Shown here piece by piece: positions 6,772-64,000 of a stretch of DNA of 64,000 nt. A program made the position numbers and the translations under genes. The stretch comes from Rebecca billardiae RCC1528 (lineage: Eukaryota; Protista; Haptophyta): the NCBI GenBank assembly GCA_965240325.2, contig OZ251222.1:744001-808000 (forward strand). Direction: 5' to 3'. The notes beneath the pieces were generated by a model, which saw only the letters and a list, made by a program, of their open reading frames with translations, did no database searches and was not told the origin of the DNA. Each line of letters begins with the position of its first letter. Positions within the stretch are counted from its first letter, which is position 1.

Positions 6772-6885
6772 CGATTGGCGCGGACTTTGTTAGTGCCGTG
6801 ACTTATAGAGTAGCGGCGTGGACAGCGGCGATTGGCGCGGACTTAGTTAGTGCCGTGACTGATAGAGTAGCGGCGTGGACAGCGG
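6772..6885. repeat. two-copy 57-bp tandem repeat
   Basis: CGATTGGCGCGGACTT(T/A)GTTAGTGCCGTGACT(T/G)ATAGAGTAGCGGCGTGGACAGCGG at 6772 and 6829, two mismatches. Confidence 0.9.
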
Positions 6886-7423
6886 CCATCCGGCCGCGGG
6901 CCCGCAGCGCGGATCGGCGGCCCTGCGCCAACGGTGCGGCACGCTTTCGGTCCGAAAGGTCCAACGACGACGCCTGGCACGACAGGCTGCCGCACTCGGC
7001 CTCAACCCGTGGCACCGCCCGGGGCTCCGCAGTCATCTCGCGGGCCGATCAAGCGCCCGATCATATTGCGGCTATTTCGGCGACGCCAGTCTCGGCGCGG
7101 CGGTGACGGTGCCACGGCACAGTGCTGAGACAGCCCGGGCACTTGCACCGTTGATGGCAGCTTATGATCGTGCTCGGATTCGAGTCATATTAAAGCTTGC
7201 TGCTCGCTGAGTCGCAGTCCGGCGCCTGAGAGTCTCACTGAGTGAGAGTCGGAGGCTGATTCCAGCGGCAGACTCCGACGACTGTTACGTACGACGACTG
7301 TTACTGTACCGCAGCCTGCCGGCAATCGGCAATCGCCCGTCACTGAAATCTGAATCGGAGCGGCTGAGCCACTAGTGACACCATGCCGCTTCGACCATGA
7401 ATGTACGACGCTCGTAGCTGAGA

Positions 7424-20023: not shown

Positions 20024-20075
<52 letters not shown>
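20024..20075. repeat. (TA)n microsatellite
   Basis: Uninterrupted TA run. Confidence 0.95.
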
Positions 20076-23174: not shown

Positions 23175-23269
<95 letters not shown>

Positions 23270-23288
23270 TCTCTCTCTCTCTCTCTCT
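23175..23288. repeat. (CT)n microsatellite
   Basis: Long CT run with one interruption. Confidence 0.95.
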
Positions 23289-34465: not shown

Positions 34466-34478
34466 CAGCAGCAGCAGC

Positions 34479-34513
<35 letters not shown>
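34466..34513. repeat. (CAG)n microsatellite just 3' of the kinase stop
   Basis: About 16 CAG units with one CGG interruption. Confidence 0.9.
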
Positions 34514-34516
<3 letters not shown>

Positions 34517-45200: not shown

Positions 45201-48200
45201 GCCAGCGAGTGCGGCGGCAGCTGCAGCACCGCGGTGCGCGCGGACGCGAGGCGCGCGAGCAGCACGTCCGTCGCGGCGGCGAGCTCGCCGGCGGAGGCGC
45301 TGCTCGCGTTCGCGCCGCCGCCCGCCTGCGCCGCGCCCTCGAGCGCCCAGCTGAACACCATCCCCGGCTCGAAGCTCGGCGGCCAGCACGGCGCGAGCTG
45401 CGCGCGCCCGCTCAGCAGCGTGGGCTCGGAGGCGCGCGCGCGCAGCTCGGGCGCGCCGTCGATGGCGAGGATCGGGCTGGCGCCGTCGCCGCGCGACACG
45501 GGCCACTCGACGGGCGCGGAGGGCACGCCGAGGAAGGACGTGACGCGCAGCACGAACACGAACGAGCCGCTCACGCCGAGCTCGGTCGGCGAGGCCGCAC
45601 CGGGCCCGCCGAGCGAGAGCTGAGGCGTGCGCGCCGGCAGCGCGCTCAGCCGCGCGTTAAGCGACGCCGCGCGCGCCGAGCGGCTCGGGTCGACGCGCCA
45701 CTCAAAGGTGGCGGGCCCGATGCCGCCGCGCAACGACGAGGAGCCGTCGAGCGCGAGCGACGCGCCCGGGCACGCCGAGAGCACTGCCGGGCCCGACACG
45801 GCCGCGACGGGCGTCGGGCACGGCACGCCCTCGCCGCACGGCGCGTCCGCGTCGATGGCGGCGCGCGAGGCGGCAGAGGCAAGGGCGGCGGCGCACGGCG
45901 TGCCGCACTGCTCGGGGCGCAGTGCGCCCGCGCGCACGCCCACCTCCAAGCCGGCGCGCACGAGCGTCGCCGAGCTCAGCCGCGCGACGAGCGTCGAGTC
46001 GTCCGCCCAGTAGCACTGCGGCGGCGTAGCCACGGCCGCGGCCGCGCCGCCGGCGACCAGCGCGACGGTGTCGTCGTCGAGGACGCGCGAGCACTCGCCC
46101 ATGCCGCTGCCCATGCCCGCGCGGTCGGTCGGCTGCGCGTCGAAGCGCAGCACCATCAGCGTCGCCGCGCCATTGAACGCCACCCCTTCGAGCACGGGCG
46201 CGTGCAGACCGACGAACGTGAACGCGAGCGCGCCCGCGGCCGGCGGCGTCGCGGCGGCCGCGGGCGTGAACTGCTGGCCGTTGAGCGAGACGCGGAGCTG
46301 CGCGCGGCCCGCGGCGCCGTACCGCGTGGAGACGACAACCTCGTCCACTGCGACGCGCGCCGGCGGCTGTGCGGGCGCGTCGCCAAAGCGCACGGCCAGC
46401 AGCGCGCCGCCGGCCAGCGCGTCGAAGCCTGCGCCCCCGATCGTCACCTCCGTGCCGCCGTTCGCGTCGCCGCTCGCCGGGCTGACGGAGCCGAGGGTGG
46501 GCGGGTCGTACGCGAGGAAGGGCAGCGCCGAGGCGGTGGTCGAGTCGGCGCTGCCGCCGCCAAGCGAGAGCTCGAGCGCCACGCTGCCCGCCGCGCCGCC
46601 CAGCGGCGGCGGTAGCACGCAGCGCGCGCGGCTCAGGGTTGGCTCCGCCGCCGACGGCGGCAGCAGCCTCGCCGCCGCCGCGCAGCCGCCGCCGCCGAGC
46701 ACGCAGCACAGCTGGCCCTCGCCGTACTCGGCAAAGCCCGAGCCCACGAGCGTGACCGCCGTGCCGCCGCCCACCGGCCCGCCCGGCGGGCGCAGCTCGA
46801 GCACCGACACGGCCGCCATGTCGTACAGCTCAAACGAGACCGGGCCAAAGAGCCCGGAGACATCCACGTCCGTGGACGCGCCCACGGCACCGAGGGCGAG
46901 GCCGACGGTGTACGCGCCCGCGGCGGAGGGCGCGCCGGACGAGGCGGCGGCGGGCATGGCGCAGCGCACCCGCGCGTCGCTCAGCACCGTCGCGCCTGAG
47001 AGCAGCGGGCCGCCACCGTCCCCGCCGCCGCCGTCGGCGCGCGTGAAGGCGCACTGGACCTCGCCAAACGCGCCGCCGGCCAGGCTGTCAAAGCCCGCAC
47101 CCTCGAGCTCGAGCGCCGCGTCGTCCGAGCCGAGCGGCGCGCCCTCGCGGCTGCCACTGCGCACGCTCACGCGGATCGCGGGCGGCGGCGGCGGGGGCGG
47201 GCTGGGCGGCGGCAGAGGCGGCGGAGAGCTCGGCGGCGGGCCCGGCGGCGGTGATAGCGGCGGTGACGCCGGTGTCGGCGGTGGCGAGCTGGGCGATGGT
47301 GACGGAGGCGGGCTCGGCGGCGGGCTCGGCGGCGCTGGCGGCGGGTATGGCTCTGTGCGCGGCGGCGGCGGCGGTGTCGGCGGCACCGGTGGCGGGCGCG
47401 GCGGCGGGGCGCGCGGCAGCGGCGGTGGCGGCGGCGTGGGCGGCGCGCCCGGCGGCACGCTCGGCGGCGCGCTCGGCGGCGATGGCGGCGGCGATGGCGG
47501 CGGCATGGACGGTGGGAGCGGCGGTGGGGCCAGCTGCGCGACAGGTGGCGGCGCTGGAGGTAGGCTCGGCGGCGACGATGGCGGTGGCGAGCTCGGTGGC
47601 GCGCTCGGCGGCGCATTCGGAGGCAGGCTCGGCGGCGGCCGGCTCGGCGGTGGCGGGCTTGGCGGCGGCCTCGGCGGCGGTGAGGGCGGAGAAGCGGGCG
47701 GCGGGCTCGGTGGTGACGTGGGAGGCGGGCTGGGCGGCGGCAGAGGCGGTGGTGGGCTCGGTGGCGGGCGCGGTGGTGGCTGGTGCGGCGGCGACGGTGG
47801 CAAGCTTGGAGGTGTCGACGGCGGTGGACTCGGCGGCGGCGATGGTGGTGGCAGGCTTGACGGAGGGCTTGGCGGCGGCGTTGGTGGCGGCGCCGGCGGA
47901 GGTGACGGCGGTGGCTTTAGTGGCGGGGACGGCGGCGGGCTTGGTGACGGGCTCGGAGGTGGCGGCACCGGTGGCGGGCGCGGAGGTGGCGATGGCGGTG
48001 GGCGTGGCCGCGGCGACGGCGGCGGCGGGCTCGGCGGTGGGCTCGGTGGCGGGCTTGGTGGCGGCGATGGGGGCGGGCTCGGCGGCGGCGGTGCCGGCGG
48101 CGGGCTCGGCGGTGGCGACGGTGGTGGGCTCGAAGGCGGCGATGGCGGTGGCGGACTTGGCGGCGGGCTGGGAGGCGAGCTCGGCGGTGGCGACAGCGGT

Positions 48201-51200
48201 GGGCTCGGCGGCGGTGGGCTTGGCGGTGGGCTCGGCGGTGGGCTCGGCGGCGGGCTCGGCGGTGGGCTCGGAGGCGGCGGTGCGGGTGGCGGGCTCGGCG
48301 GCGGCGACGGCGGAGGTCTCGGCGGCGGCGACGGCGGCGGCGGGCTCGGCGGTGGGCTCGGTGGTGGGCTCGGCGGTGGCGACGGCGGTGGGCTAGGAGG
48401 CGGTGGGCTCGGCGGCGGGCTCGGCAGCGCGCTCGGAGGCGGGCTCGGCGGTGGGCTCGGCGGCGGTGGGCTCGGCGGCGGGCTGGAAGGCGGGCTCGGC
48501 GGCGGGCTCGGCGGCGGGCTCGGCGGTGGCGGGCTCGGTGGCGGGCTCGGCGGCGGGCTCGGAGGTGGGCTCGGCGGTGGCGATGGCGGTGGCGGGCTGG
48601 GTGGCGGGCTCGGTGGCGCGCTCGGCGGCGGGCTGGGCGGTGGCGACGGTGGCGGTGGGCTTGGGGGCGGGCTGGGGGGTGGGCGTGGCGGCGGCGACGG
48701 CGGTGGGCTCGGAGGCGGCGGGCTTGGGGGCGGGCTTGGGGGAGGCGACGGCGGCGGGATCGGAGGCAGCGACGGCGGTGGCGGGCTCGGCGGCGGGCTC
48801 GGCGGCGGGCTTGGCGGCGGCGACGGCGGTGGACTCGGCGGCGGCGGGCTTGGCGGCGGGCTCGGCGGCGGGCTTGGAGGCGGTGGGCTTGGCGGCGGGC
48901 TCGGCGGCGGGCTTGGAGGCGGGCTCGGCGGCGGCGATGGCGGCGGCGGAGAGGGAGGCGGCGACGGCGGTGGCGATGGCGGTGGCGATGGCGGCGGCGA
49001 TGGCGGCGGCGGGCTCGGCGGCGGGCTCGGTGGCGGCGATGGCGGCGGGCTTGGAGGCGGGCTCGGCGGTGGCGAAGGCGAAGGCGGTGGCGAAGGTGGT
49101 GGTGTCGGCGGCGGGCTCGGAGGCGGCGACGGCGGCGGCGGGCTCGGCGGCGGGCCCGGCGGCGGGCTCGGCGGCTGGCGCGGCGGCGGGCTCGGCGGCG
49201 GGCTCGGCGGCGGCGGGCTCGGCGGCGGGCTCGGCGGCGGGCTCGGCGGCGGGCTCGGCGGCGGGCTCGGCGGCGGTGATGGTGGCGGTGGAGAGGGCGG
49301 CAGGGAGGGCGGTGGAGACAGCGGGGGCGATGGCGGTGGAGATGGCGGCGGCGGCGATGGTGGCGGGCTCGGCGGCTGGCGCGGCGGCGGGCTCGGCGGC
49401 GGGCTCGGCGGCGGCGGGCTCGGCGGCGGGCTCGGCGGCGGGCTCGGCGGCGGGCTCGGCGGCGGTGATGGTGGCGGTGGAGAGGGCGGCGGGGAGGGCG
49501 GTGGAGATGGTGGAGGCGAGGGCGGTGGGGATGGCGGCGGTGGGCTGGGCGGCGGACGCGGTGGCGGCGATGGCGGTGGGCTGGGCGGCGGGCTTGGTGG
49601 CGGTGGCGATGGCGGTGGCGATGGCGGTGGGTTCGGCGGCGGGCCAGGCGGTGGGCTCGGTGGTGGGCTCGGGGGCGGGCTCGGCGGAGGTGACGGCGGT
49701 GGTGACGGCGGTGGTGGACTCGGCGGAGGGGCCGGTGGTGGAAATGGTGGCGGGCTCGGTGGTGGGCTCGGCGGCGGGGATGGTGGCGGGCTCGGTGGAG
49801 GGCTCGGCGGCGGCGATGGTGGCGGCGGCGAAGGCGGTGGCGAAGGTGGTGGTGTGGGCGGCGGGCTCGGAGGCGGGCTCGGCGGCGGCGGGCTGGGCGG
49901 TGGGCTGGGCGGTGGGCTGGGCGGCGGGCTGGGCGGCGGACTCGGTGGCGGGGTGGGTGGCGGGCTGGGCGGTGGCGACGGCGGCGGGCTCGGCGGCGGG
50001 CGTGGAGGCGGGCTCGGTGGCGGCGATGGCGGCGGCGGAGAGGGAGGCGGCGACGGCGGCGGTGATGGCGGGGGCGATGGCGGCGGTGATGGCGGCGGTG
50101 GGCTCGGCGGCGGGCTCGGTGGCGGCGATGGCGGCGGGCCCGGCGGTGGCGATGGCGGCGGGCTCGGCGGCGGCGGGCTCGGCGGCGGCGATGGCGGTGG
50201 CAATGGTGGTGGGCTCGGTGGCGGTGATGGCGGCGGCGGCGATGGTGGCGGGCTCGGCGGTGGGCTCGGTGGTGGGCTCGGCGGCGGGCTTGGAGGCGGT
50301 GGGCTTGGCGGCGGGCTCGGCGGCGGGCTTGGAGGCGGGCTCGGCGGTGGCGATGGCGGCGGCGGAGAGGGTGGCGGCGACGGCGGTGGCGATGGCGGTG
50401 GCGATGGCGGCGGCGATGGCGGCGGCGGGCTCGGCGGCGGGCTCGGTGGCGGCGACGGCGGCGGGCTCGGCGGCGGGCTCGGCGGCGGTGGGCTTGGCGG
50501 CGGGCTCGGCGGCGGGCTTGGAGGCGGGCTCGGTGGCGGCGATGGCGGCGGCGGAGAGGGAGGCGGCGACGGCGGTGGCGATGGCGGTGGCGATGGGGGC
50601 GGCGATGGCGGCGGTGGGCTTGGCGGCGGGCTCGGAGGCGGGCTCGGCGGGGGTGGGCTCGGCGGCGGGCCCGGCGGCGGGCTCGGCGGTGGCGACGGAG
50701 GCGGGCTCGGCGGCGGCGGGCTCGGCGGTGGCGACGGCGGCGGGCTCGGCGGCGGGCGTGGAGGCGGGCTCGGCGGCGGCGATGGCGGCGGCGGAGAGGG
50801 AGGCGGCGACGGCGGCGGGGATGGCGGGGGCGATGGCGGTGGTGATGGCGGCGGTGGGCTCGGCGGCGGGCTCGGTGGCGGCGATGGCGGCGGGCCCGGC
50901 GGTGGCGATGGCGGCGGGCTCGGCGGCGGCGGGCTCGGCGGCGGCGATGGCGGTGGCAATGGTGGTGGGCTCGGTGGCGGTGATGGCGGCGGCGGCGATG
51001 GTGGCGGGCTCGGCGGTGGGCTCGGTGGTGGGCTCGGCGGCGGGCTTGGAGGCGGTGGGCTTGGCGGCGGGCTCGGCGGCGGGCTCGGCGGCGGGCTCGG
51101 CGGTGGCGATGGCGGCGGCGGAGAGGGAGGCGGCGACGGCGGTGGCGATGGCGGTGGCGATGGCGGCGGCGATGGCGGCGGCGGGCTCGGCGGCGGGCTC

Positions 51201-52948
51201 GGTGGCGGCGACGGCGGCGGGCTCGGCGGCGGGCTCGGCGGCGGTGGGCTTGGCGGCGGGCTCGGCGGCGGGCTTGGAGGCGGGCTCGGTGGCGGCGATG
51301 GCGGCGGCGGAGAGGGAGGCGGCGACGGCGGTGGCGATGGCGGTGGCGATGGGGGCGGCGATGGCGGCGGTGGGCTTGGCGGCGGGCTCGGTGGCGGCGA
51401 TGGCGGTGGGCTCGGCGGCGGGGTGGGTGGCGGTGGCGAAGGCGGTGGCGAAGGTGGTGGTGTCGGTGGCGGGCTCGGAGGCGGGCTCGGCGGCGGTGGG
51501 CTCGGCGGCGGGCCCGGCGGCGGGCTCGGCGGTGGCGACGGAGGCGGGCTAGGCGGCGGCGGGCTCGGCGGCGGCGACGGCGGTGGCAATGGTGGCGGGC
51601 TCGGCGGCGGTGATGGCGGCGGCGGCGATGGTGGCGGGCTCGGCGGTGGGCTCGGTGGTGGGCTCGGCGGCGGGCTTGGAGGCGGTGGGCTGGGTGGCGG
51701 GCTCGGCGGCGGGCTTGGAGGCGGGCTCGGCGGCGGCGACGGCGGTGGCGGCGAGGGTGGCGGCGACGGCGGCGGAGATGGCGGGGGCGATGGCGGTGGA
51801 GATGGCGGCGGCGGCGATGGTGGCGGGCTCGGCGGCTGGCGCGGCGGCGGGCTCGGCGGCGGGCTCGGCGGCGGCGGGCTCGGCGGCGGGCTCGGCGGCG
51901 GGCTCGGCGGCGGGCTCGGCGGCGGCGATGGTGGCGGTGGAGAGGGCGGCGGGGAGGGCGGTGGAGATGGCGGAGGCGAGGGCGGTGGGGATGGCGGCGG
52001 TGGGCTGGGCGGCGGGCGCGGTGGCGGCGATGGCGGTGGGCTGGGCGGCGGGCTTGGTGGCGGTGGCGATGGCGGTGGCGATGGCGGTGGGTTCGGCGGC
52101 GGGCCAGGCGGTGGGCTCGGTGGTGGGCTCGGGGGCGGGCTCGGCGGAGGTGACGGCGGTGGTGACGGCGGTGGTGGACTCGGCGGAGGGGCCGGTGGTG
52201 GAAATGGTGGCGGGCTCGGTGGTGGGCTCGGCGGCGGGGATGGTGGCGGGCTCGGTGGAGGGCTCGGTGGCGGCGATGGTGGCGGTGGCGAAGGCGGTGG
52301 CAAAGGTGGTGGTGTGGGCGGCGGGCTCGGAGGCGGGCTCGGCGGCGGCGGGCTGGGCGGTGGGCTGGGCGGTGGGCTGGGCGGCGGGCTGGGCGGCGGA
52401 CTCGGTGGCGGGGTGGGTGGTGGGCTTGGCGGCGGCGACGGTGGTTGCGACGGTGGTGGCGGACTCGGCGGTGGCGATGGCGGTGGCGATGGTGGCGGGC
52501 TTGGCGGCGGGCTCGGTGGCGGAGGCGACGGCGGCGGGCTCGGCGGTGGGCCCGGCGGCGGGCTTGGCGGCGGCGGGCTCGGCGGCGGGCTCGGCGGCGG
52601 GCTCGGCGGCGGGCTCGGCGGCGGCGATGGCGGCGGCGGCGAGCGTGGCGGTGGAGACGGCGGAGGCGACGGCGGCGAACAGTCACCACTGCCCTTGCCC
52701 CCTCCGCCGCAGGGCTCGGTCAGGCGACGGCGGCGAGCAGTCACCAATGCCCTTCTCCATACCCGATGCGCCGCGCGTTTCCAGCCGAGCTCGTCGCCCG
52801 CCGAGACGCCGGAGGCATCGAGCCCGGCAGACGTGGCCGAGATCTTCTGCTCACGTGCGATACTCACGTACTGCACGACCACGGCGCCCGGCGCGACTGC
52901 GAGCAGCAGCACCGCCGCTCGAGTGAGCGCCCTCTTGCGCGGTCGCAT
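39287..52948 (-). CDS. giant polycystin-1/REJ-like receptor: signal peptide, ~1800-aa Ser-Pro repeat, IPT/TIG repeats, PKD/REJ, GAIN/GPS, TM helices, IQ motif, EF-hand pair
   Basis: 4553-aa ORF; P.GGP..GGT.VT..G.GF IPT motifs; LDGSSS and DASASFDPD REJ motifs; NRPPYGG; GPS CVWWD...W..DGC...CACTHLTDF; MQRVFRGRRAR; DADDSGHVDLAEF and DSDGDGVISFTEL. Confidence 0.85.
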   Translation of the reverse strand: MRPRKRALTRAAVLLLAVAPGAVVVQYVSIAREQKISATSAGLDASGVSAGDELGWKRAAHRVWRRALVTARRRRLTEPCGGGGKGSGDCSPPSPPPSPPPRSPPPPSPPPSPPPSPPPSPPPSPPPPSPPPGPPPSPPPSPPPPSPPPSPPPSPPPSPPPSPPPPSQPPSPPPSPPPTPPPSPPPSPPPSPPPSPPPSPPPPSPPPSPPPTPPPLPPPSPPPPSPPPSPPPSPPPSPPPSPPPSPPPFPPPAPPPSPPPPSPPPSPPPSPPPSPPPSPPPGPPPNPPPSPPPSPPPPSPPPSPPPSPPPRPPPSPPPPSPPPSPPPSPPPSPPPSPPPPSPPPSPPPSPPPSPPPSPPPPSPPPSPPPRQPPSPPPSPPPPSPPPSPPPSPPPSPPPSPPPPSPPPSPPPSPPPSPPPSPPPPSPPPSPPPSPPPSPPPSPPPPSPPPSPPPLPPPSPPPSPPPPSPPPSPPPSPPPGPPPSPPPPSPPPSPPPTPPPSPPPSPPPPTPPPSPPPSPPPSPPPSPPPPSPPPSPPPSPPPSPPPSPPPPSPPPSPPPSPPPSPPPSPPPPSPPPSPPPSPPPSPPPSPPPPSPPPSPPPSPPPSPPPSPPPPSPPPSPPPSPPPSPPPSPPPPSPPPSPPPSPPPSPPPSPPPPSPPPSPPPLPPPSPPPSPPPPSPPPSPPPGPPPSPPPSPPPSPPPPSPPPSPPPSPPPSPPPSPPPPSPPPSPPPRPPPSPPPSPPPSPPPPSPPPSPPPSPPPGPPPSPPPPSPPPSPPPSPPPPSPPPSPPPSPPPSPPPSPPPPSPPPSPPPSPPPSPPPSPPPPSPPPSPPPSPPPSPPPSPPPPSPPPSPPPSPPPSPPPSPPPPSPPPSPPPSPPPSPPPSPPPPSPPPSPPPSPPPSPPPSPPPPSPPPSPPPLPPPSPPPSPPPPSPPPSPPPGPPPSPPPSPPPSPPPPSPPPSPPPSPPPSPPPSPPPPSPPPSPPPRPPPSPPPSPPPSPPPTPPPSPPPSPPPSPPPSPPPSPPPPSPPPSPPPTPPPSPPPSPPPPSPPPSPPPSPPPSPPPSPPPSPPPFPPPAPPPSPPPPSPPPSPPPSPPPSPPPSPPPGPPPNPPPSPPPSPPPPSPPPSPPPSPPPRPPPSPPPPSPPPSPPPSPPPSPPPSPPPPSPPPSPPPSPPPSPPPSPPPPSPPPSPPPRQPPSPPPSPPPPSPPPSPPLSPPPSLPPSPPPPSPPPSPPPSPPPSPPPSPPPSPPPPSPPPSPPPRQPPSPPPGPPPSPPPPSPPPSPPPTPPPSPPPSPSPPPSPPPSPPPSPPPSPPPSPPPPSPPPSPPPSPPPSPPPSPPPPSPPPSPPPSPPPSPPPSPPPPSPPPSPPPSPPPPSPPPSPPPSPPPSPPPSPPPPSLPPIPPPSPPPSPPPSPPPPSPPPSPPPRPPPSPPPSPPPPSPPPSPPPSAPPSPPPSPPPPSPPPSPPPSPPPSPPPSPPPPSPPPSPPPSPPSSPPPSPPPPSPPPSPPPSALPSPPPSPPPPSPPPSPPPSPPPSPPPSPPPPSPPPRPPPSPPPSPPPAPPPPSPPPSPPPSPPPSPPPSPPPPSPPLSPPPSSPPSPPPSPPPPSPPSSPPPSPPPSPPPAPPPPSPPPSPPPSPPPSPPPSPPPPSPRPRPPPSPPPRPPPVPPPPSPSPSPPPSPPLKPPPSPPPAPPPTPPPSPPSSLPPPSPPPSPPPSTPPSLPPSPPHQPPPRPPPSPPPPLPPPSPPPTSPPSPPPASPPSPPPRPPPSPPPPSRPPPSLPPNAPPSAPPSSPPPSSPPSLPPAPPPVAQLAPPPLPPSMPPPSPPPSPPSAPPSVPPGAPPTPPPPPLPRAPPPRPPPVPPTPPPPPRTEPYPPPAPPSPPPSPPPSPSPSSPPPTPASPPLSPPPGPPPSSPPPLPPPSPPPPPPPAIRVSVRSGSREGAPLGSDDAALELEGAGFDSLAGGAFGEVQCAFTRADGGGGDGGGPLLSGATVLSDARVRCAMPAAASSGAPSAAGAYTVGLALGAVGASTDVDVSGLFGPVSFELYDMAAVSVLELRPPGGPVGGGTAVTLVGSGFAEYGEGQLCCVLGGGGCAAAARLLPPSAAEPTLSRARCVLPPPLGGAAGSVALELSLGGGSADSTTASALPFLAYDPPTLGSVSPASGDANGGTEVTIGGAGFDALAGGALLAVRFGDAPAQPPARVAVDEVVVSTRYGAAGRAQLRVSLNGQQFTPAAAATPPAAGALAFTFVGLHAPVLEGVAFNGAATLMVLRFDAQPTDRAGMGSGMGECSRVLDDDTVALVAGGAAAAVATPPQCYWADDSTLVARLSSATLVRAGLEVGVRAGALRPEQCGTPCAAALASAASRAAIDADAPCGEGVPCPTPVAAVSGPAVLSACPGASLALDGSSSLRGGIGPATFEWRVDPSRSARAASLNARLSALPARTPQLSLGGPGAASPTELGVSGSFVFVLRVTSFLGVPSAPVEWPVSRGDGASPILAIDGAPELRARASEPTLLSGRAQLAPCWPPSFEPGMVFSWALEGAAQAGGGANASSASAGELAAATDVLLARLASARTAVLQLPPHSLAAGWAYDLALTASMAAAPAQASTARVRVLVARQPLRAVIAGGDRRVPSSLRLAVDASASFDPDAPTADGGDGGTPPLSFAWSVANASSLEPVALEPSAANTSGALFELAPGTLPPGVYALTVRVSAPGRAPAAASVALEAVPGAVPTLGFEPLGRRKWPAVFERNPDRLTIIARLDAASRALEAAGQARFSYEWSARRVGAAGALEPAGLDLADSERVTTTGAALRTVAFRSGVLAPGATYAFRLAVLGGAQPAYTEVRVTINRPPYGGGLAVAPASGVALQTSFALYAAGWAVDDEEDLPLSYAFSQAPLGAAVADAAALGAASASASAAALLPAGNRTLTVRVADALGGAAHAHAAVAVAPPGEGAGLLDSVLTRAYAAVATGAAETATQLVSALADALDATPAGGDNATVASATLARLLELTAGAAEASAPTAEARAASASALAAVLEAAPPGAFDASAQAAGLEQVAALASQSAASGVDGPTAAALLRAADAALSADADADAPPSAAEAEAVGAAATSAVGALATALLAGTVPGEAPFEAVGKAINVSAARADAGALSNITLPGPGSAGSVGVPASVFGGVPLELLEGGVDVVLWSSARNVHGDPSTQANGTAVASGLVTPVFSVTLYSASAGLALTISDLPDDGRVLVEVPGLDGAGGAGEWGCVWWDEGSSAWLDDGCETVVARADDGAPARYCACTHLTDFAGVSVPSSADGAREDVESFTINTLSVDELGRPLASAPSLETNPYIYGAVIGLSAACALSVALLGALDARDARRRRARLAALTSRLHPALPPPKGAAPDSPTAKGSESARSGASSESRTTRGGSFSFSRQGLRTLRGRGGTDAERRRAAADAAQRSTDRAMERLARKEAAERELKRAAAREARRTGGAPPGAPSSAPASFAKPPPPPPPADGGAATAVASDGAAVQTLAQAIAAGLASRPSTGAEAEPHEAVRQTRADSRGDIADRLEARLDALDDLVAQKRHAAAASMQRVFRGRRARAAVATVAPPAAPRGADRTRDHAATALLRRVLIKIQSDHSLLGILFADPQDAKRAELAQTFWNIAMLGLVITCMLYSGSDAPEAGGSSERVNVVHAVLTALLTAALTAPALALFRALFRWGYGRRAAPLSKRVFAAFLRAELQEREAERAPFSLSVRKGVASALLQREASRSTSRSTSRSGSFSSSFGGSSFGRRRRRRFSDRRSGGSWLRFELPSMAAPAAAKAATEVRPGLSPPTPGRVGAPFALIDPLHDDSGDDEPGGAAATPTPPPQPSPVPSPRGLLENTGGGGGGLLGAEGAAGAGGGAAWSAAPDADSAEGAADAAQRPSASAVAADAASASVRATAPAARPKPPPPRNAPPAPPESRHAGNGARAAAPAPEAAAGSAAGLAAVMIDAASRGPADAPSRPPPVLPPSACAPKHTRLSASPGSTTGSSGGRTPQHAAPVSFGPASQERRETASEMPARIERVSTASSAESDARVHPGPPRPVGLPPAGGVPRANPRLRVSPLDTAAATAVSPQADEAGDGASGASSARRFSQSHSSRSVGTPSPVRSPPALDGSDGPADSSAGSPGIRGVTIAAACAQAEDGAEARGAEAPPAMPPPEPVLTPHGIAGSIRPGSRGSNRSDASAAGRHGDRGTSPDTPSSRRRSGSRDSRKADALRRASPRAGPELAPTAGGDDTADEGELSGATRLPVMLPEQSPPSSPPVPQPPSSTGAPPADSSANPLTADTAAPPAADTATPAAAAPDGASATMQPSAGHNLDEVTIELLRHKFKLFDADDSGHVDLAEFGALLDNLGFRLGKRRVRALAKELDSDGDGVISFTELVDWYDEMVEDEVAAAARAEAGLRGVLTRALRATALPPRVRLALAWLSMWAIFVALALLAMAYAFSFGNEQTRYLLFSWTLAEGQTLSIEEPVVIAVVVLVPVLFDRLLANGGATGEAINELLATTVGICVHWMHTVGTC
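47170..52680 (-). repeat. coding SPPP/SPPPP tandem repeat with higher-order duplications
   Basis: 12/15-nt units; diagnostic variants recur at 2460-bp (49741/52201) and 756-bp (50201/50957) spacing. Confidence 0.95.
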
Positions 52949-53234: not shown

Positions 53235-55380
53235 TAAATTCCCCTTTATAACGGGCTCCGGGTGATCAGGCTGGCGGCCGAAGCCTCCAGCCCTACCCTG
53301 GCCAGCCCCCAACCAACCAGTGAACCACCACCCTCACCCAACCTCAAACCACTGACCGAGACACCTAGTGTCTTGACACCACTCCACTGTGGACAGCCCG
53401 CCTCCAGAGGGGGCGGGGGTATGCCATTGCCGACAGCATACAAGCCCAACACTGTGGGGAGGTCCCAGGTACAAGCAGTGCACGGCCTTGCAATTCAAGA
53501 TCATCGAGTTTGAGCCGAGTCGGCAGAAGGGGCACCCCGTAGGGTGCCCCAGTGTGGGCAGAGGGCCAGCCACTAGCCGATCCCTGCGCGGGGAAGGGGA
53601 CTGAGGGGACTGTCATCGAGCCCAGTAGCTGGGCAGGGGTCTGGGCCACTGGCCCCGGAAGCGAGGCGCCTGTATTTCACTCGTGCAGCTATGGAGGCAG
53701 AGGGGGTCATGTCAGACATGTGTGCTACATCGGGCATCAAGGCAGGGCGTGGGCCGCTGTAGGAAGCAAGCAAAGTGGTGGCGATGGCTAATACGCCTGG
53801 GGAGGTGTCGTTCGCTCGCCTCTTCCTGCTGCGCTGTGCAGGGGGTAGCGTGCTGCGCTGCGGCACATTTGCCTGGCGGGGTTTGGGCGGGGGGCTGTCT
53901 TGCTGAGCTTGACTAGGAGGAGGCGGCCTGCGCCTGGGGGCTGCCAGTGGCCTGGCAGAGCCAGCAGGCGGCTGTGTGGCCTGCTGTCCAGTGTCTGGCT
54001 GTGTAAGGCTGCTTTGAGCTCCGTTACCAGTGTGACTGCCAGCAGCGGGGTCTGCCGCCATCTCAGGCCCCCCATGTGTCAACACATTGTCCGGCGGACC
54101 CACAACGCTGCGAGCCAGCGGGGTGGCATATTGGAGCGGCCATGCCACAAGAGGTGTGGCAGGCTGCAGGGGCCACACAATCACCATAGGGAGGGGGCGA
54201 GCACGCTGAAGAGGCCATGCCCGCAAGAGTAGCTGGGGGCGCACGTGGTGACCGCGCGCTATGGGCTGGTGCAGGTTGGCCTGCCCCGCGCCCGCCTGCC
54301 AGCCCTGGCCAGCCTGAGCAGGGGGTTGCTGCTGGATGACAGGTGGTCCTTGCAACTGATTATTTAAGGCCATCGCCCCTCCTGGGCCTGCCTGTGCCTG
54401 TGGGGGTGGGGGCTGCCCCCCCCGGGCCTTGCCCAGGCGGCGGCAGAAGCTCCCTGGCATGTCGAAGGAGACGTCCTGCCTTTGACAGCTGGGAGTCCAC
54501 GTCCTTGCGGGCCTGCATGATGCCTAGCCCTGCCTTCAGTAAGGCCACGTGCATGGTCCTGCCTACTAGATGCACGTTGCCCCCCACAGTGGTCTTCAGT
54601 GTGCTGGGCACCCTGCCCATGAGGGCAGCCCCAGAGCATATGTGACGTGCCAAGTTCCACGCTGCAGCCTGTCCCTGCATGAAGGGCTCAATTACATGGG
54701 ATACGCTTCTGGCAGCAGCCATTCGGTAGGCATCGACCTCAGGGCACTCAGAGAAGAGGTGGTGCTCAGTATCTGGCGCTGGGTGTAGCAGTGGAGCATG
54801 ATCGCAGAGGGGGCAGGCATCGCTGAATGCAGCCCCCGACTGGAATCGCACAGAGAGCAACGTCGGGTCTCGCAGGGCAGCCGGCTGCAGGAACTCATAT
54901 CCGTGGTGGAGTATGTAGTAGGCAGGCACAGTGTTGGCCTGCCAGGTCCGTAGTATGCCAGTGGCGGAGGCCTCTGGCCACACACCAGTCCATTCACCCA
55001 CCAAGTCACAGCTGGACTTGGTGGCTTGCAGGTGGGTTGCCCTTTGTGACAGCACACTGTCATACACAAGGGGCTTGATTCGGCCCGCCACTGGCTCTCC
55101 ATTGGCCAGCTGTACCAGCGCATGGGAACCCGCATTTGGGTGGCCACCTCTCTTGTGAGTCACACAGGGGGTTGTGGGGTCAGAGCAGCAGAGCTTGGCC
55201 CCCGCATCGCTGCATGCGTTGAGCAGGGTTTTGGGGTTCAACCCTGCTTGGCGCAAAGCCGCCACACTGTGTTGGCTGACAGTGCAGTGCTGGTCCCCTG
55301 GGGCGTGCGTGAGGCTGAGGTGCCGCGCAGCAGCATCGTCAGCAGAGTGCGCCTTGACATGCTCAAATGAAGTGGTGCTA
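53235..55380 (-). mobile_element. 5'-truncated non-LTR retrotransposon (LINE) retaining the RNase H C-terminus, CCHC finger and long 3' region
   Basis: The frame 55370-54360 encodes FEHVKAHS (RNase H motif) and CPLC-x11-HHLFSEC; composition differs from host genes; the 3' end is duplicated at 19724-19924. Confidence 0.8.
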
Positions 55381-55535
55381 TGAGTATGAGAATATTGTAT
55401 TGATGAATGATGAGTTGATGAATGGTGGGGTGTTGTGCCGTTACGTATTTACGCCCACCGACCGTCGTGACGGTCACCAACCAAACTCAACACCGGCCTC
55501 GCACGTGTCCTTGCGGCGCGAAAGGGCATCCCAGC

Positions 55536-56762
55536 TGTCGAAGGGAATGAAGAGCCCGAAACGACTGAGCTAAATCGGTTCGCGCGAACCGATTTAGCTC
55601 AGTCGTTTCGGGCTCTTCAACTCCTCGGACATAACCGTAAGTCTCCTGTGGGACACCCCGCGAGGGGCTGTAGTCCCGTCCAGTGTTCTGACGGATTTGT
55701 TGTCGAGGTTTTTCTCTCCCCGCCTGGTCTTTCCCAGGTGTTCCACCCTGCGTGCTCGTCTGCTCTGTGGCTTCGTAGAGACTCCGTCTTTTGTGGGCGG
55801 TGAGCCCTTCTTTGCTGCTGTGGCTTTGTGGGGCTCTTTTTGTGTCTTTGTTGTTGACCCGGGCGACTGTACCCGGAGGTTGCGCGTCGCGTACCGTGCT
55901 CGTTTTTCTGTCGTCTTTCTTTGTCGGTCATCTTCTTCGTGCTCCCCTCTTTCGTTCGTCTTTTTTGCCGACTCCTCGCTTTTCATTCCCCCCCGGAGCC
56001 GCGAGGCTCTCGCGAGGTCGAAAGCGCTTCGCGTGAAAGGCCAAGAGTTGCCCGCGTCGGTCGGTCGCTGGATTCGAACAGATGACTTTACGGTTGTGTC
56101 GAAGGGAATGAAGAGCCCGAAACGACTGAGCTAAATCGGTTCGCGCGAACCGATTTAGCTCAGTCGTTTCGGGCTCTTCAACTCCTCGGACACAACCGTA
56201 AAGTCACCTGTTCGAATCCAGCGACCGACACGCAGGCATAAGAACTCTTGGCCCTTCACGCGAAGCGCTTTCGACCTTCACCTCGCGAGAGCCTCGCGGC
56301 TCCGGGGGGGAATGAAAAGCGAGGGAGTCGGCAAAAAGACGAACGAAAGAGGGGAGCACGAAGAAGATGACCGACAAAGAAAGACGACAAAAAAACGAGC
56401 ACGGTACGCGACGCGCAACCTCCGGGTACAGTCGCCCGGGTCAACAACAAAGACACAAAAAGAGCCTCACAAAGCCACAGCAGCAAAGAAGGGCTCACCG
56501 CCCACAAAAGACGGAGTCTCTACGAAGCCACAGAGCAGACGAGCACGCAGGGTGGAACACCTGGGAAAGACCAGGCGGGGAGAGAAAAACCTCGACAACA
56601 AATCCGTCAGAACACTGGACGGGACTACAGCCCCTCGCGGGGTGTCCCACAGGAGACTTACGGTTATGTCGAAGGGAATGAAGAGCCCGAAACGACTGAG
56701 CTAAATCGGTTCGCGCGAACCGATTTAGCTCAGTCGTTTCGGGCTCTTCAACTCCTCGGACA
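55536..56762. mobile_element. TG...CA element with 5-bp TSD: three direct 96-bp palindromic terminal repeats and two inverted internal segments (TRIM/Ginger-like, unclassified)
   Basis: Repeats at 55536-55631, 56097-56192 and 56667-56762 are identical; CCAGC at 55531-35 and 56763-67; 55632-56096 is the reverse complement of 56193-56666 with few differences. Confidence 0.85.
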
Positions 56763-57842
56763 CCAGCCACTTGTGCGTCGGTAGCCGTGTACCAGCTATC
56801 CACAGAGCACGCGCCGAGAGCAGCATGGCGCGCGCACACGTCGCCCGTCGCACCGGCTGAGAGTGCGCCGAAAGCGGCAGTAGCGAGAGTGGCCCCCGAT
56901 CCGACTGAGGGTAAGGCGGGTCTGACGGTCTCGGCGGGGGCCCTCCGCAAGCGCATGATTTCTGCAGCCTGGGTCATCGGCGTCTGTCCAGCTGGTGCAA
57001 CGCTCCGCCAGCGGCGGAGAGTGCCAGCTGACATCCGGACCTGCACCTTCGCCCTCGACCGGGCACAGCATATTCTAGCTAGCTACTGCCGTAACTACTA
57101 CACTCTACAGTAACGTCACAGCATGAGCATGTGATCGGCAGCCGCATGGGACTGCGTGAGCGCGCCTCGGTCTCGCGGTGATCGGCCGCCACTCGCCAGG
57201 CTCTGCTCGGACTGAATCGCGGGCCGCAGGCAGCCGACCGGCGCCGGAACGGCATGTAAATCCCGGACTGAGCATCATCTGATCATCACTCGTCAGACTG
57301 AGTGCATCCGTGCTACTCGCTCCGAAAGCGTCAGTATCGACTATCGAGACTATATCGAGTAGACTGCCCATGCACAGACGACCGGCGGAAGCTGGATATA
57401 GAATGGTCGTACCCTGAACTGCGTCTACGACTCATTGGCCGGACGTACAGTCCGCGTCGCGGTCGCCGCATGACGCGACTGGCGCTTGGCCTTTAGATGA
57501 GCCCACTGAGTATCAGTCTGAGTACTGTCTGTATGAGCGGTGATGATGCCTAACTGCTATCTGCGCCTCGTCGGATGATATACTCATCGGTATCGTCGTC
57601 TCAGCTAATTAATATATCAGCAACCATCTGCTGTTATCATATCGCGTCAGAATGGTCCGCGTCAATTAACGGTTCGGATATGTAGCGTCATCTCACAAGT
57701 CACGCAGCCACAGAGTGATCGGAATCCGCGCCGCCGATAGTGAATCTGAATCATGGTAACCGGCGCCGGCCGATCCGATATATATATATCAGGTTCAGTC
57801 GTTGATCACTGTGCGGCACTGTCCTATGGCCGTTAGTACTCC

Positions 57843-57948
<106 letters not shown>

Positions 57949-58154
57949 ATATATATTGTTATAGCGGGCAGCAGTCGGTCATTTAGCCCCGCCGCCTCGG
58001 ATTCCGCTGTCGCGGGTCCGTGACTGTACGGTGGCATGCTCACAATTCGGAGGTACTGATTTATTAAGACCATCACATGGCATATATAATAAGTGTGTTC
58101 ACGACTCATCAGCGCATTATGTTAATAATAATATTGTCTGAGTCCGTGGCGGCA

Positions 58155-59669
58155 TCAGGCGAGGTCAAGAGCGTCCGGAACCTGCAACGCCTCTGCGTGC
58201 GCGTAAGCGTGCGCGAGCAGCCGGAGGACCCGCGCGCGCAGTGCGCGAGCGGTGACACCCGCCATGCCAGGGTCCTCGACCTCATCGTCGGCGGTGGCGT
58301 CCAACTTCATGGCGTCCAACGCGCCAGCATTGCCGGCCACCGCCGCTGCTGCAGTCTGACTCTGCGTCCCCGGTGTGCTGCCCTCAGAGCCAGGGTCCGG
58401 CGTGAGCGGCACCGTGATGCCTGGCTTCAACGCGACCACGTGCGTCGCTGTCGACGATGGAAGAAAGAGCTGCACGTGCGGCACGCCGTGCTCGAGCGCT
58501 CCGAGGTGGCGCGCTGCGTCCATCCCTCCGGCTGTCGACACGTCGACAGTGGCAAAGCGCACAGCATGCGCACTGCCAGGAGGCTGCACGCCCGTCGCGA
58601 GCAGCTCCTTCCAGACGGGGCTGAACGCCCGGCACGCGCCGCAGCGCGGGTCAAAGAACTCGACGAGCCACGGCTCGCCGCTCGTCGCCACCGCGTGTGC
58701 GAGGGCGTCGAGCGACGTCACGCGTAGCGCCCCACGGCGGGCCTCTGGCGCGTTAGCGCGGCTCGTGGGCTCGGGGGCGGCCGGCGTTGGCGCGGGGTGC
58801 GCGGCCTGTGCGGCAGGGCCAGGCGGCTCGGGCTGTGCACGCGCCACGCCTGTGAGGGACATGACGACCCAGCTCGGCCCCACTGGCAGCCCGAGGACGC
58901 GCATGCGCACGCCCCGGAGGTGGCGGAAGCTCTCGCGCCCAGCAACCCGCGCGAGCTCAAACCCGGCGCTGCGCACGAGGGCCTCGGCGCGCGCGAGCGT
59001 GAGCACGTCGCCATCCTCGCGAGGGTAGCCTGCAAGGTGAAGATACGCGCCGAGCAGCCGGACGGCGAGGTAGTCCCCCGCCCAGTCGAGCAGGAAGATG
59101 CGGCCGCCCGGCGCGAGTACGCGGCGCGCCTCGCGCAGCGCGGCGGCGCGGTCGTGCCAGAAGTGGAAGCTCGACGCCGAGACGACGAGGTGGACGGTCG
59201 CATCCGCGAGAGGGAGGTGCTCCGCGTACGCGTACGTCGTCGAGAGCCCCTTCAGACGCGCCTGCATGAGCATCAGCTTGCACGAGTCAGCGCAGATCAC
59301 GTTCCAGGTCGGGTGCTCCTTTGCGAGCGCGCTCGCGAGCGCGCCGGTGCCGCAGCCGACGTCGAGGACGGTGCACCTCTCGCCGCACGTCAGGGCTTCA
59401 ATATCAGGCTGTAAGCGCTCGAGCGCGTACGCGACGGAGGTGTTGAGGTATGCCGCCCACCGCGTGTCATACGTCGCGGCGGCCGCGTCGTACTCGGCCA
59501 CAACCGACGGCCGGCGCGCCGCCGCACTGAGCAGCACGATGCCGCCGACAAGGGCGGCAAGGGCGAGAAAGAGGGCAACGCGTGGGCGGGGGACATGCCG
59601 GGCCGGCATTGAGCGCGCGTAGTCCTCAGCGGGGCTGCGCTCCACGCGCAGCAACGGGCAGCTCTCCAT
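58155..59669 (-). CDS. membrane-anchored class I SAM methyltransferase fused to a thioredoxin-like domain
   Basis: TM anchor; VLDVGCGTG, AEHLPLAD, SFHFW, RVLAPGG; then PWLVEFFDPRCGACRAFSPVW...FATVDV...GVPHVQLF; start 59669 or 59609. Confidence 0.85.
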   Translation of the reverse strand: MESCPLLRVERSPAEDYARSMPARHVPRPRVALFLALAALVGGIVLLSAAARRPSVVAEYDAAAATYDTRWAAYLNTSVAYALERLQPDIEALTCGERCTVLDVGCGTGALASALAKEHPTWNVICADSCKLMLMQARLKGLSTTYAYAEHLPLADATVHLVVSASSFHFWHDRAAALREARRVLAPGGRIFLLDWAGDYLAVRLLGAYLHLAGYPREDGDVLTLARAEALVRSAGFELARVAGRESFRHLRGVRMRVLGLPVGPSWVVMSLTGVARAQPEPPGPAAQAAHPAPTPAAPEPTSRANAPEARRGALRVTSLDALAHAVATSGEPWLVEFFDPRCGACRAFSPVWKELLATGVQPPGSAHAVRFATVDVSTAGGMDAARHLGALEHGVPHVQLFLPSSTATHVVALKPGITVPLTPDPGSEGSTPGTQSQTAAAAVAGNAGALDAMKLDATADDEVEDPGMAGVTARALRARVLRLLAHAYAHAEALQVPDALDLA

Positions 59670-59943: not shown

Positions 59944-60480
59944 ATGCGCGCGGCGGCGCGGCGCGAGTCGCTGGAGCGCCCGCGCAAGCGGCCGGAGCGC
60001 TTCACGGAGGAGTGGGGGTTCTCGAGCTCCTCGCGTCACTTCGTCCGCCCGTCGCCCATGTTCACGCCGGTGACGGGCAGGCGCCTTGTGGAGATGGACC
60101 TGCTGCAGAGGTCGATGGAGCCGTTCATCTGCCCCAAGTGCCACAAGCACAGGGGCTTCATGTTGGCCAAGGAGGACGAGCGGATGTGCGGGCTGGGCGG
60201 GAAGGAGTGCTGGCGGTGCAAGTCGTGTGTGGCAAGGCAATCGGCGAGCTCCAGCTGAGCAAGCCGGTGGCGCGCGCGCCCGGGAAGCGCGGGCAGCTGC
60301 CCAACCAGTCGAACGTGGCGTGGGTGCTCGGGTGCAACTCGGTCGGCCTCGGCGAGGCGGCGAGCACGCGGCTGCTCAGCGCGCTGAGCGTGCCACCTGT
60401 CACCTCCAACACGTGGGCGCGGGCGGAGAAGCGCAGTGTCGCGCCGGTGGCGGCTGCGGCGCGGGCCAGCTGCCAGGAGA
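59944..60480 (+). pseudogene. frameshifted N-terminal relic of a Kolobok/Mutator-like transposase
   Basis: GRRLVEMDLL...CPKC...GLGG..CWRCKSC, then after removing a duplicated TG at ~60226-31: GKAIG...SNVAWVLGCNSVGLGEAASTRLLSALSVPP; no catalytic domain follows. Confidence 0.65.
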
Positions 60481-61118
60481 AGCCAGATATGACTGATAAC
60501 GGGCGCAGCTCGGCGCGGGCATCATTGCTGCGTTCGAGCGCGGCGAGCAGCCGACCGAGGACGGACGATAATCGATATGGCGTGCCTGATGAGTGATGCT
60601 GGTGGCGACGATTAATGATCAGACGGTTGCGCCTGATCCGGGGAGAGTAGAGTAGTAGAGACTCTACGAGACTCGAGACTCACGAGAGGGCCACATCCGC
60701 CAATGAAGAATGATCGGACAATCTGGGACGCGGATCGCCGCCGCGGATCGGTCATCGGACGACTGGGCGCTGGCTGATGAATAAGCCTGACGAGCGCCTT
60801 AGTTATACCAGTAGGCTACCGCTCCGTAATATAAATACGCCGGAGCCAGCATGTGAGTCGTCACTCGTAGTATAACGTGACGATGATGATCAGTGATGAG
60901 CACTCTCTATATACGCTGGCCACTACTCAGTCAGTGTATGAGTGATGATCCGTCACTTCTCAGTTCTGATTCTGAATCTGACGACTGACTCGTCTCGGAC
61001 TCTCACTCTGTCTCTGAGACTTGGCTCTGAGACGACGAGAAACCGGAGACTGAGATCGAAGAGAGACTCCGGCGGACGCCGATGATAGCAGCAGCGCGCG
61101 GTTGATGAACACTTGGAG

Positions 61119-61955: not shown

Positions 61956-64000
61956 CTATTCTTTGCTGGGCCTCGCAGACGCCGCCGCCGGCTTTGCGCC
62001 GCCATCGGACGCCGCGCGATCGTCCGCGTTGCCAGCAGCCGTCGCGGCGCTGACGTCCACCGCAAGCCGCAGCAGCCCGAAGAGCGGACGCGCATCTGCC
62101 GTCGAGTCGCCGCCGTCCCTGGCGACGACGGGCGCGGCGCGCGCGCTGCCCAGCCCGAGCGGGTCAGCCGGCGTCGGCTCGCCCAGCGTCGCGCGCAGCA
62201 GCGCGGTGGTCGCCACCGACGGCGTGAGCAGCCTCGCCGTGCCCAGCGCCCACACCAGCCGCCCCGCCTCGGCCGGAGCCAGCGCGCCCTCGGCGGCCGC
62301 GGCCGAGGCGCGGTCGGGCGCCGCGCCGAGCCCGTATTCAAGACTCTCTTGCACGAGGCCGAGGAGCTCTGCGCCACGCGGGAAGCCGCCGCGCGGCGCC
62401 GCGCGCGGGTCCGCGCTCACGGTGGCGACGGCCCATGCCAGGTGCGCCAGCTCTGACGGCGCGCACCGCGCCCGCAGCGCGCCGGCGGATGCGTCCGCGA
62501 TCTGGCCAAGCAATTTGAAGTCGTGATACCGGGCATGCGCGAACGCGGCGGCGAGCAGCCCGAGCGAGCCCACGCCAAAGGCGCTGAGCTGCCGCGCGCG
62601 CACGGCGGCCGCGAGCTCGTCGAGCAGCCGCGCGTGCGGCTCGCGCGCCGCGCTGCACAGCGACCACGCGAGCTTCGCGAGGTCGACGTCGTCCGCGTCG
62701 GCGAGGTGCGGGACCATCCGAAGTCCGAGCTCGGGCAGCAGTCGCCGGGTCGACTCGGGCAGCGGGCTGAAGCCGTCCACCGACGCGTACGCCTGGTGGC
62801 GCGCGGCGCAGGCACGCGCGTGGGCGGCCGCGCGGTCGGTCGGGCACGGGGGCGAGCGCCGCGCCGCGCACGCGCGCGCAGCCGGCCGCGCGCACGCACG
62901 CGCACAGCGCGTGGCATGAAGCCTACCGCGCGCGCGGCGCGCGGCCGCATCGGCGCACACACGCGTCGCGCGGCGCGCGTCGCGCGCGGCTGCGCGCGGC
63001 TGCGCACCCAGAGAAGCTTGCTCAGGGAGCGGGTGGTGCGCCAGTCGAGCCGCGTGCTCTCCGCCTCAGCGGCGGCGGCGCCCGGCGCTGAGCCGGCGCC
63101 GCCCGGCCCGGCGCCGTGCAGCGCGGAGAGCGTGTGCACTGCCACGCGCTCCATCAGAGCGCCGTGGCGCACGCACGCCTGCGCGTCGTGACACGGCCGT
63201 GGTGCCGCGCAAGGGCGGGCGGGGGCGCTGGGCGCGCGGCTGAGAGGGCGCGCGCGGGGCGGGGTGCGCGCGTGCGCGGCGCGGCGCGCGCCGAGGCGCT
63301 CTCGCGCGCGCGGCGGCGCGTGCCTGCGCCATCGCCCACGAGAGCAACGCGGCATCGTGAACGCTGAGCGCGCGCTCGTGCGTCGCGGCCGCGTCTGCCA
63401 CCCTGCCCACCAGCGCGCGCGTCTCCGCGGAGTTCGGGTCTGCCGTGGCGTACGCGGCGGCGAGGTGCGCGATGGCCGCGGGCTCGAAGCCGCGCAGCCG
63501 CGCGGCCGACGTCGGGCTCGTGTCCCCCGCCTCGTCGGCACCCGGCTGCGCCCCAGGCCGGCCGGCGCGAGCGCGCGCGCCAGCGGCCGCGCACCCAGGC
63601 GCCCCCGTCGATCGATCGGCGCGCGCGTCTGCCGGGGCCCCCTCGCCCTCCGCCGGCGCGCTCGGCGGCGGCAGCGGCGCGAGCTCGCGGAAGAGCGCCG
63701 GCTCGGCGACCCCGGCGCTCGCGAGCGCGTACAGCACGACCGAGAGCTGGTGCGGCCGCATCCGCGCCGCGTGCGCGCGCACCGCCGGCACGGCGCGGTC
63801 GAGGAACGTCGCTGCGCGCGCGTGGCCGGACGCTCTGAAGGCCCACACGAGCTCAGCGAGCTGCGCGCGCGAGCACGCGTGCGGGTCGACGCCGTCGGCG
63901 AGGGCGTCGAAGACGGGGCTCTCGCGCACGAGCGCGCGGAGGGACGGCTCGGCCGACGCTGACCCCGCCGACCCCGCCGCCGACGACGCCGCGCTCGCGC
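61956..64000 (-). CDS. OPR/RAP(FASTK)-like helical-repeat RNA-binding protein, 3' part; introns 63179-63323 (GC-AG) and 62793-63007 (GT-AG)
   Basis: Repeats QLAELVWAF, QLSVVLYALA, DAALLSWAMA, SLSKLLWAYA, DLAKLAWSL, ELAHLAWAVA; both introns restore the frame and complete repeat units. Confidence 0.75.

Follow-up and report, generated by a model that had tools for sequence, protein, structure and literature searches.

The locus described here lies in the nuclear genome of a Pavlovales haptophyte, within a 64-kb stretch of DNA (hereafter the window, meaning the whole stretch that was analysed) that ranges from 57 to 83% GC and carries long single-exon genes and microsatellites. The genes of the window stand in mixed orientations and include NEK-like kinases, MYND finger, UNC-93, pectinacetylesterase-like, peroxidase, TLC, NHL and homeodomain genes, together with a methyltransferase-thioredoxin fusion and a giant polycystin-like receptor. 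The best named relatives of the peroxidase come from Pavlovales haptophytes, at 80% and 70% identity. In the related alga Diacronema lutheri, the genome has a GC content of 73%, 45% of the genes consist of a single exon, and LTR elements make up the main annotated repeats (PMC8379373). Contigs of the same strain in the Logan collection match the window at 100% identity over 6.1 and 4.3 kb, and proteins identical to those of the window occur in two Logan runs only.

Between two genes of the window we found an insertion-like, non-coding locus of approximately 1.2 kb (1227 nt), in which three copies of a short repeat, P, alternate with two longer segments, A and A', to give the order P-A-P-A'-P, and in which the pentanucleotide CCAGC stands outside each end (Table 1). 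Codon periodicity is absent from about 54900 to 58100, a stretch of 50-65% GC that encloses the element; a weakly periodic region adjoins on the left, and a methyltransferase gene (58155-59669, minus strand) follows on the right. Because this stretch lacks codon periodicity, and because the open reading frames (ORFs) inside A gave no Pfam match and no homologue, we consider the element to be non-coding and to occupy an intergenic spacer, bordered by genes that end at about 54.5 and 58.2 kb. The layout was checked to the single base by direct reading of 55300-57000, by repeat finding, by a mismatch-tolerant pattern search and by script. At that resolution it bears out the preliminary description of the locus, which had proposed the architecture CCAGC-P-A'-P-A-P-CCAGC with all P modules facing one way and the internal segments inverted; the perfect 72-bp palindrome that had been placed at 55548-55619, centred between TTCGC and GCGAA, was recovered in P1 and again in P2 and P3. 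The flanking CCAGC repeat was found around the whole array only, not around P2, and two 5-mers drawn from the local sequence would agree by chance with a probability of 0.0016-0.0029.

Table 1. Features of the P-A-P-A'-P locus, in positions of the window
Feature	Position	Strand	Remarks
CCAGC, left copy of the 5-bp direct repeat	55531-55535	no strand	Candidate target-site duplication
P1, 96-bp near-palindromic repeat, TGTC...GACA	55536-55631	+	Perfect 72-bp core at 55548-55619
A, 465-bp non-coding segment	55632-56096	+	T-rich, A-poor; imperfect inverted ends
P2, same sequence and orientation as P1	56097-56192	+	Core at 56109-56180; forms the tip when the whole element folds as a hairpin
A', 474 bp, reverse complement of A	56193-56666	-	10 differences from A
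P3, same sequence and orientation as P1 and P2	56667-56762	+	Core at 56679-56750; not the reverse complement of P1
CCAGC, right copy of the 5-bp direct repeat	56763-56767	no strand	Candidate target-site duplication

The three P modules are 100% identical over their 96 bp. Each starts with TGTC and ends with GACA, and positions 13-84 form the perfect 72-bp palindrome. When P is compared with its own reverse complement, mismatches occur at 10 positions (5-6, 10-12 and their mirrors), and the sharing of these same asymmetric positions by every copy places all three in one orientation. Repeat finding showed the 48-nt arms of P to be 90% complementary, as are the left arm of P1 and the right arm of P3, and the mismatch-tolerant pattern search with a 32-nt P arm returned six matches where 0.00 were expected. 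The predicted P hairpin has a folding energy of -47.3 kcal/mol (z = -14.6), and none of 200 shuffled sequences folded as well. Taken alone, P has the traits of a miniature inverted-repeat element, being short and non-coding with inverted ends, and the flanking duplication is present only around the array. The left terminus, TGTCG, matches the pattern TGTNR, and the right terminus, which reads TGTCC inward, matches TGT only.

The A segment has a marked strand bias, with 9.7% A versus 32.9% T on the plus strand and G equal to C; its reverse complement is accordingly A-rich (33% A, 10% T). It carries imperfect inverted ends of its own, approximately 32 bp in length (55632-55663 and 56064-56096), and the palindrome around P2 therefore runs on into A on either side. 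All four P/A junctions fall at the identical nucleotide in either orientation of A, and the ends of A and the termini of P share 17-20 nt of inverted microhomology exactly at these junctions. The entire 1227 nt are predicted to fold as a single hairpin of -812.6 kcal/mol, in which P2 forms the tip and P1 pairs with P3; the arms of this hairpin measure about 560 nt, with no loop, in the fold, and 483 nt at 96% by repeat finding. Inspection by eye also picked out one motif resembling box A (56156-56166) and another resembling box B (56210-56219), the latter mirrored at 56070-56079.

A and A' are separated by 10 events, namely five substitutions and five indels (1, 1, 2, 5 and 6 bp). All 10 are confined to the 266 bp closest to P2 (under uniform placement, p is about 0.004), and the outer 199 bp of A contain no difference. 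The presence of 5- and 6-bp indels among these events indicates that the two copies are real, separate DNA, and the differences speak, as had been argued before, against a fold-back of the assembly.

A search for relatives returned no further copy of P or A in the 64-kb window besides the three P modules, A and A'. Patterns built on P and A had no match in viral contigs or in the metagenome contigs scanned, and neither blastn nor the patterns found a match in prokaryotic genomes, plasmids or phages, a result on which a vector, plasmid, phage or bacterial source was set aside. Seven ORFs from the element and its surroundings were looked up as exact sequences and led to no other contig; when ORFs taken from A', from across the right junction and from the left flank were used in homology searches, no contig with a second copy or an empty site was found. 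No gene for an integrase, a reverse transcriptase or a matching transposase lies in the window. A Mutator-like fragment near 60.3 kb is the only trace of a transposase there, and a longer target duplication is expected of elements of that type (PMC11899658). Neither a replication initiator nor a telomere-resolving enzyme domain was detected in or around the element. Further candidates were set aside on the sequence itself: a tRNA-derived SINE head (ARAGORN returned 0, and Rfam gave no tRNA match even at E <= 10), a hammerhead-bearing retrozyme or Penelope-like repeat (no hammerhead match in Rfam even at E <= 10), and a herpesvirus-type origin palindrome, given a window of ordinary eukaryotic genes with a peroxidase nearest to those of Pavlovales. 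A kinetoplastid origin was dismissed on the same grounds, and also because genes of the window stand in mixed orientations. The locus is a real and unusual structure, known from a single site, and is best seen as a non-autonomous terminal-repeat element.

Two simple routes to such a structure make predictions that the locus contradicts. A single fold-back copy about P2, whether it arose by hairpin priming or by replication of a hairpin-capped break, should leave P3 as the mirror image of P1 and the right flank as that of the left. P3 instead agrees with P1 at every base and departs from its mirror image at 10 positions, and the left and right flanks are complementary at 26 of 100 positions. 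Had A been inverted by homologous exchange within the palindromic core, two chimeric and fully symmetric variants of P should be present, and each P is five mismatches away from these. As both models fail, whatever inverted A must have worked precisely at the ends of P, within or beside TGTC/GACA, and have left P untouched.

Our data are consistent with a model, plausible but tentative, and one that could well prove wrong, in which P-A-P-A'-P is a non-autonomous DNA element whose P modules serve as both ends for an integrase-type DDE enzyme and whose A segment is orientation-free cargo. P would be a minimal 96-bp foldback module, with arms that differ slightly in their subterminal positions behind a common TGTC terminus, and each P would combine a left and a right end in back-to-back arrangement. 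An integrase-like DDE enzyme, its gene located elsewhere in the genome, would cut at the P termini and join them to a target with a 5-bp stagger, giving rise to the CCAGC duplication. Because all P copies share one orientation, any left end could combine with any right end further along to make a valid unit, whether a lone P, a P-A-P or the whole array, and such units would be nested within each other. The A segment would be passive cargo, tolerated in either orientation, and would have been flipped relative to P exactly at the P termini. Three candidate routes could accomplish this flip: the inner P ends may have been cut and then rejoined in the opposite sense, the template may have been switched twice via the TGTC terminus and the inverted ends of A, or the segment may have been copied through hairpin ends. 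The array would have moved, or might still move, as one unit, and the flanking repeat is equally explained by the insertion of one P or one P-A-P followed by rearrangement in place.

We infer the class of enzyme from the termini and the flanking repeat. The preliminary description had associated TG...CA ends and a 5-bp direct repeat with integrase-type DDE insertion, and the TGTCG left end, together with the duplications reported for TDD-4/5, proved compatible with that view (PMC2836005). The termini of Gypsy and Ginger elements follow TGTNR, the inverted ends of Ginger1 span 40-270 bp, and the duplications of TDD-4/5 are 5 bp long (PMC2836005). Among LTR retrotransposons, 5 nt is the canonical duplication, and LTR-I-LTR-I-LTR tandems with one duplication have been recorded in plants as the outcome of one insertion (PMC11899658). 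The dominance of LTR elements among the annotated repeats of D. lutheri (PMC8379373) implies that integrases are present too, and was counted in favour of the DDE model. Several observations weigh against it. One locus is known, the window contains no partner gene, and the right terminus matches TGT only; the inverted ends of A (~32 bp) are unaccounted for if A is random cargo. The absence of any difference among the P copies, versus 10 between A and A', means that the DDE model needs either homogenisation of P or two source copies of A.

The element resembles the Ginger/TDD group in having inverted ends in the 40-270 bp range, a TGTNR-type left terminus and a duplication within 4-5 bp, and departs from it in lacking a linked transposase gene in the window and in a right terminus that matches TGT only (PMC2836005). 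The target here, CCAGC, fits neither CCGG/CCGT, the preference of Ginger1, nor RTATAY, and Ginger2 favours AT-rich targets; its length of 5 bp is that of TDD, the Ginger duplication being 4 bp (PMC2836005). Families of the Ginger/TDD type have no haptophyte case in the literature cited here. The locus also has features in common with bacterial composite transposons, including self-sufficient end modules around passive cargo and several nested valid units; unlike these, it is eukaryotic and nuclear, its 96-bp module encodes nothing, and the cargo is present twice in opposite orientations. As in foldback and long-palindrome miniature elements, the inverted arms make up most of the element and are non-coding. 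In classical foldback families the arms consist of short subrepeats in tandem, and the duplications are longer. Here, in contrast to foldback elements, the arms are modular (P plus A), and the P modules are direct rather than mirrored, with 10 mismatches to the mirror.

A local rearrangement is the next explanation to be weighed, and we regard it as possible, if rather unlikely. According to this explanation, either a single P, be it a palindromic miniature element or just a palindrome, or a P-A-P was resident at CCAGC, replication stalled at the hairpin, and two template switches, guided by the TGTC terminus and the inverted ends of A, added an inverted A and a further P, so that the CCAGC repeat would date from the first insertion only. 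The great stability of the P hairpin, the folding of the whole region back on itself and the inverted microhomology of 17-20 nt exactly at the junctions all point in this direction, as does the lack of a second composite in the window or in the collections scanned. However, the exclusion of a single fold-back copy means that two precise switches are needed. A fresh copy should also match its template, yet A and A' are 10 events apart and the P copies show none.

An improbable origin is that of a tandem TRIM-like miniature LTR retroelement, in which an LTR-I-LTR-I-LTR array was copied from RNA and inserted by a retroviral-type integrase, with one internal segment flipped. The locus has direct, identical terminal repeats, TG...CA ends and a 5-bp duplication, which is within the 4-6-bp range, and its alternation of three identical repeats with two internal segments inside one 5-nt duplication is that of the tandem LTR/TRIM insertions documented in plants (PMC11899658). 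The likeness ends with the mutually inverted internal segments, the 96-bp palindromic repeat and the lack of a primer-binding site, a polypurine tract and coding capacity. A-richness is usual in the sense strand of retroelements, and the reverse complement of A is A-rich. No primer-binding site was recognized: on neither strand does a TGG occur in the first 17 nt after a P. In place of a polypurine tract each P is preceded by the sequence ...GACTT(T)ACGGTTR. P itself, at 96 bp and with 75% of its length in a perfect palindrome, has no room for separate U3, R and U5 regions, and no tRNA-like or ribozyme match was obtained. Reverse transcription, moreover, fixes the orientation of the internal segment relative to the LTR, and cannot give both P-A-P and P-A'-P with P unchanged. 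For these reasons, namely the missing TGG and purine tract, the palindromic rather than U3-R-U5 character of P and the inverted internals, the comparison with LTR elements and TRIMs made in the preliminary description was not upheld.

We attach a similarly low probability to the integration of a stretch of concatemer from a hairpin-ended linear replicon, with units joined head-to-head and tail-to-tail. The single strand of such a replicon forms the circle A-P-A'-P, and copying of this circle would make A alternate in orientation while P reads one way at every junction. This is the sole simple model that yields the four junctions and the three P modules facing the same way without extra steps. 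With its perfect core and, close to the base, a small asymmetric bubble, P has the shape of a hairpin-end junction, and the ends of A extend the palindrome around P2. Poxvirus-type telomere junctions and parvovirus dimer junctions likewise consist of alternating units joined at an imperfect palindrome with an asymmetric bubble; unlike them, the haptophyte locus has no replication genes, a unit of 465 bp that is non-coding, a chromosomal position, a 5-bp flanking repeat and no sequence relative that we could find. The element and its surroundings contain no gene for replication or resolution, the collections searched yielded no relative among viruses or plasmids, and the complete P at both outer ends and the 5-bp flanking repeat are unexplained by the replicon model itself. 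To our knowledge, nothing of this type is described among the cellular elements of eukaryotes. A combined version, in which P-A-P-A'-P would be the chromosomal imprint of a cellular hairpin-ended linear DNA, inserted as a stretch of array by an integrase-type enzyme that cut at the base of the P hairpin, has in our judgement only a slim chance of being correct.

Palindromes are hot spots for inverted chimeras, and the same-strain short-read Logan contigs offer no independent confirmation, since they end before the element is reached, in a (TCTC)n microsatellite at about 57920, 1.1 kb to its right; an artefact of assembly or library, in which amplification or sequencing produced a fold-back chimera at the P hairpin that was kept in the consensus, is nevertheless very unlikely, because the differences between A and A' comprise five substitutions and five indels, among them those of 5 and 6 bp, P3 does not mirror P1, the DNA of the right flank is ordinary, unique and runs into the next gene, and other parts of the window are 100% identical to independent contigs over the 6.1 and 4.3 kb noted above.

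The significance of the locus depends on which of these origins is correct. As a rearrangement at a single site, it would represent a neat but minor case of palindrome-driven inverted duplication. If it derives from a hairpin-ended replicon, it would point to a mode of transposon replication that has not been described in eukaryotic cells. The locus is in any case a natural hairpin of 1.2 kb in a very GC-rich, compact genome, and as such bears on the stability of palindromes and possibly on the production of hairpin RNA. If a family of these elements exists, a self-contained foldback of only 96 bp would be able to provide a transposon with its two ends and to accept cargo in both orientations, and the haptophytes, in which mobile DNA has hardly been described, would gain an unclassified type of element.

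The plus strand of segment A, the non-coding segment that recurs in reverse complement as A' within the array of three 96-bp near-palindromic P repeats, contains 9.7% A residues as against 32.9% T, with G equal to C. This extreme strand skew is absent from the 500 bp flanking on each side, and it hints that the segment may be RNA-copied or transcribed in origin. By eye, each P arm contains a box-A-like RNA polymerase III motif, and a box-B-like motif lies at the end of both A and A' proximal to P2, the middle P copy. The two motifs are approximately 54 nt apart and directed outward from P2, and the box-B-like motif has a mirror counterpart on the minus strand. A search for a tRNA-like fold with ARAGORN and Rfam found none.

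Features of the element and of the surrounding window
Feature	Position	Strand	Remarks
57-bp tandem duplication	6772-6886		two copies
(TA)26	20024-20075		long perfect microsatellite
(CT)57	23175-23288		long perfect microsatellite
(CAG)16	34466-34515		long perfect microsatellite
4553-aa ORF	39287-52948	-	
Imperfect tandem array	~47142-52700		5.5 kb
Segment A	55632-56096		skewed
Mirror counterpart of box-B-like motif	56070-56079	-	
Box-A-like motif	56156-56166	+	by eye
Segment A'	56193-56666		skewed
Box-B-like motif	56210-56219	+	
(TCTC)26	57844-57948		long perfect microsatellite
Mutator-like transposase fragment	60012-60596	+	match ~60264-60482; Pfam PF20700, E = 3e-7
70-nt inverted repeat	62824-62893 / 63250-63319		spacing 356 nt

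On the right-hand side, 3.4 kb from the element, lies a Mutator-like transposase fragment that matches profile positions 57-129 of 357 and is also called as a gene in the same-strain Logan contigs; no sign of a link to the element was found. Two such short-read contigs (L001 and L002) stop short of the element because both terminate within the (TCTC)26 tract. The weak inverted repeat beyond the fragment (71% complementary) lies in a very GC-rich stretch and is probably a composition effect. The tandem duplication, exact-looking at 96% match, is in a non-coding stretch.

The imperfect tandem array (GC 0.83, GC skew +0.43) encodes the N-terminal part of the 4553-aa ORF and translates as (SPPP)n. 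The C-terminal 2570 aa contain TIG, REJ, GPS and EF-hand domains, which identify the product as a polycystin-1-like receptor.
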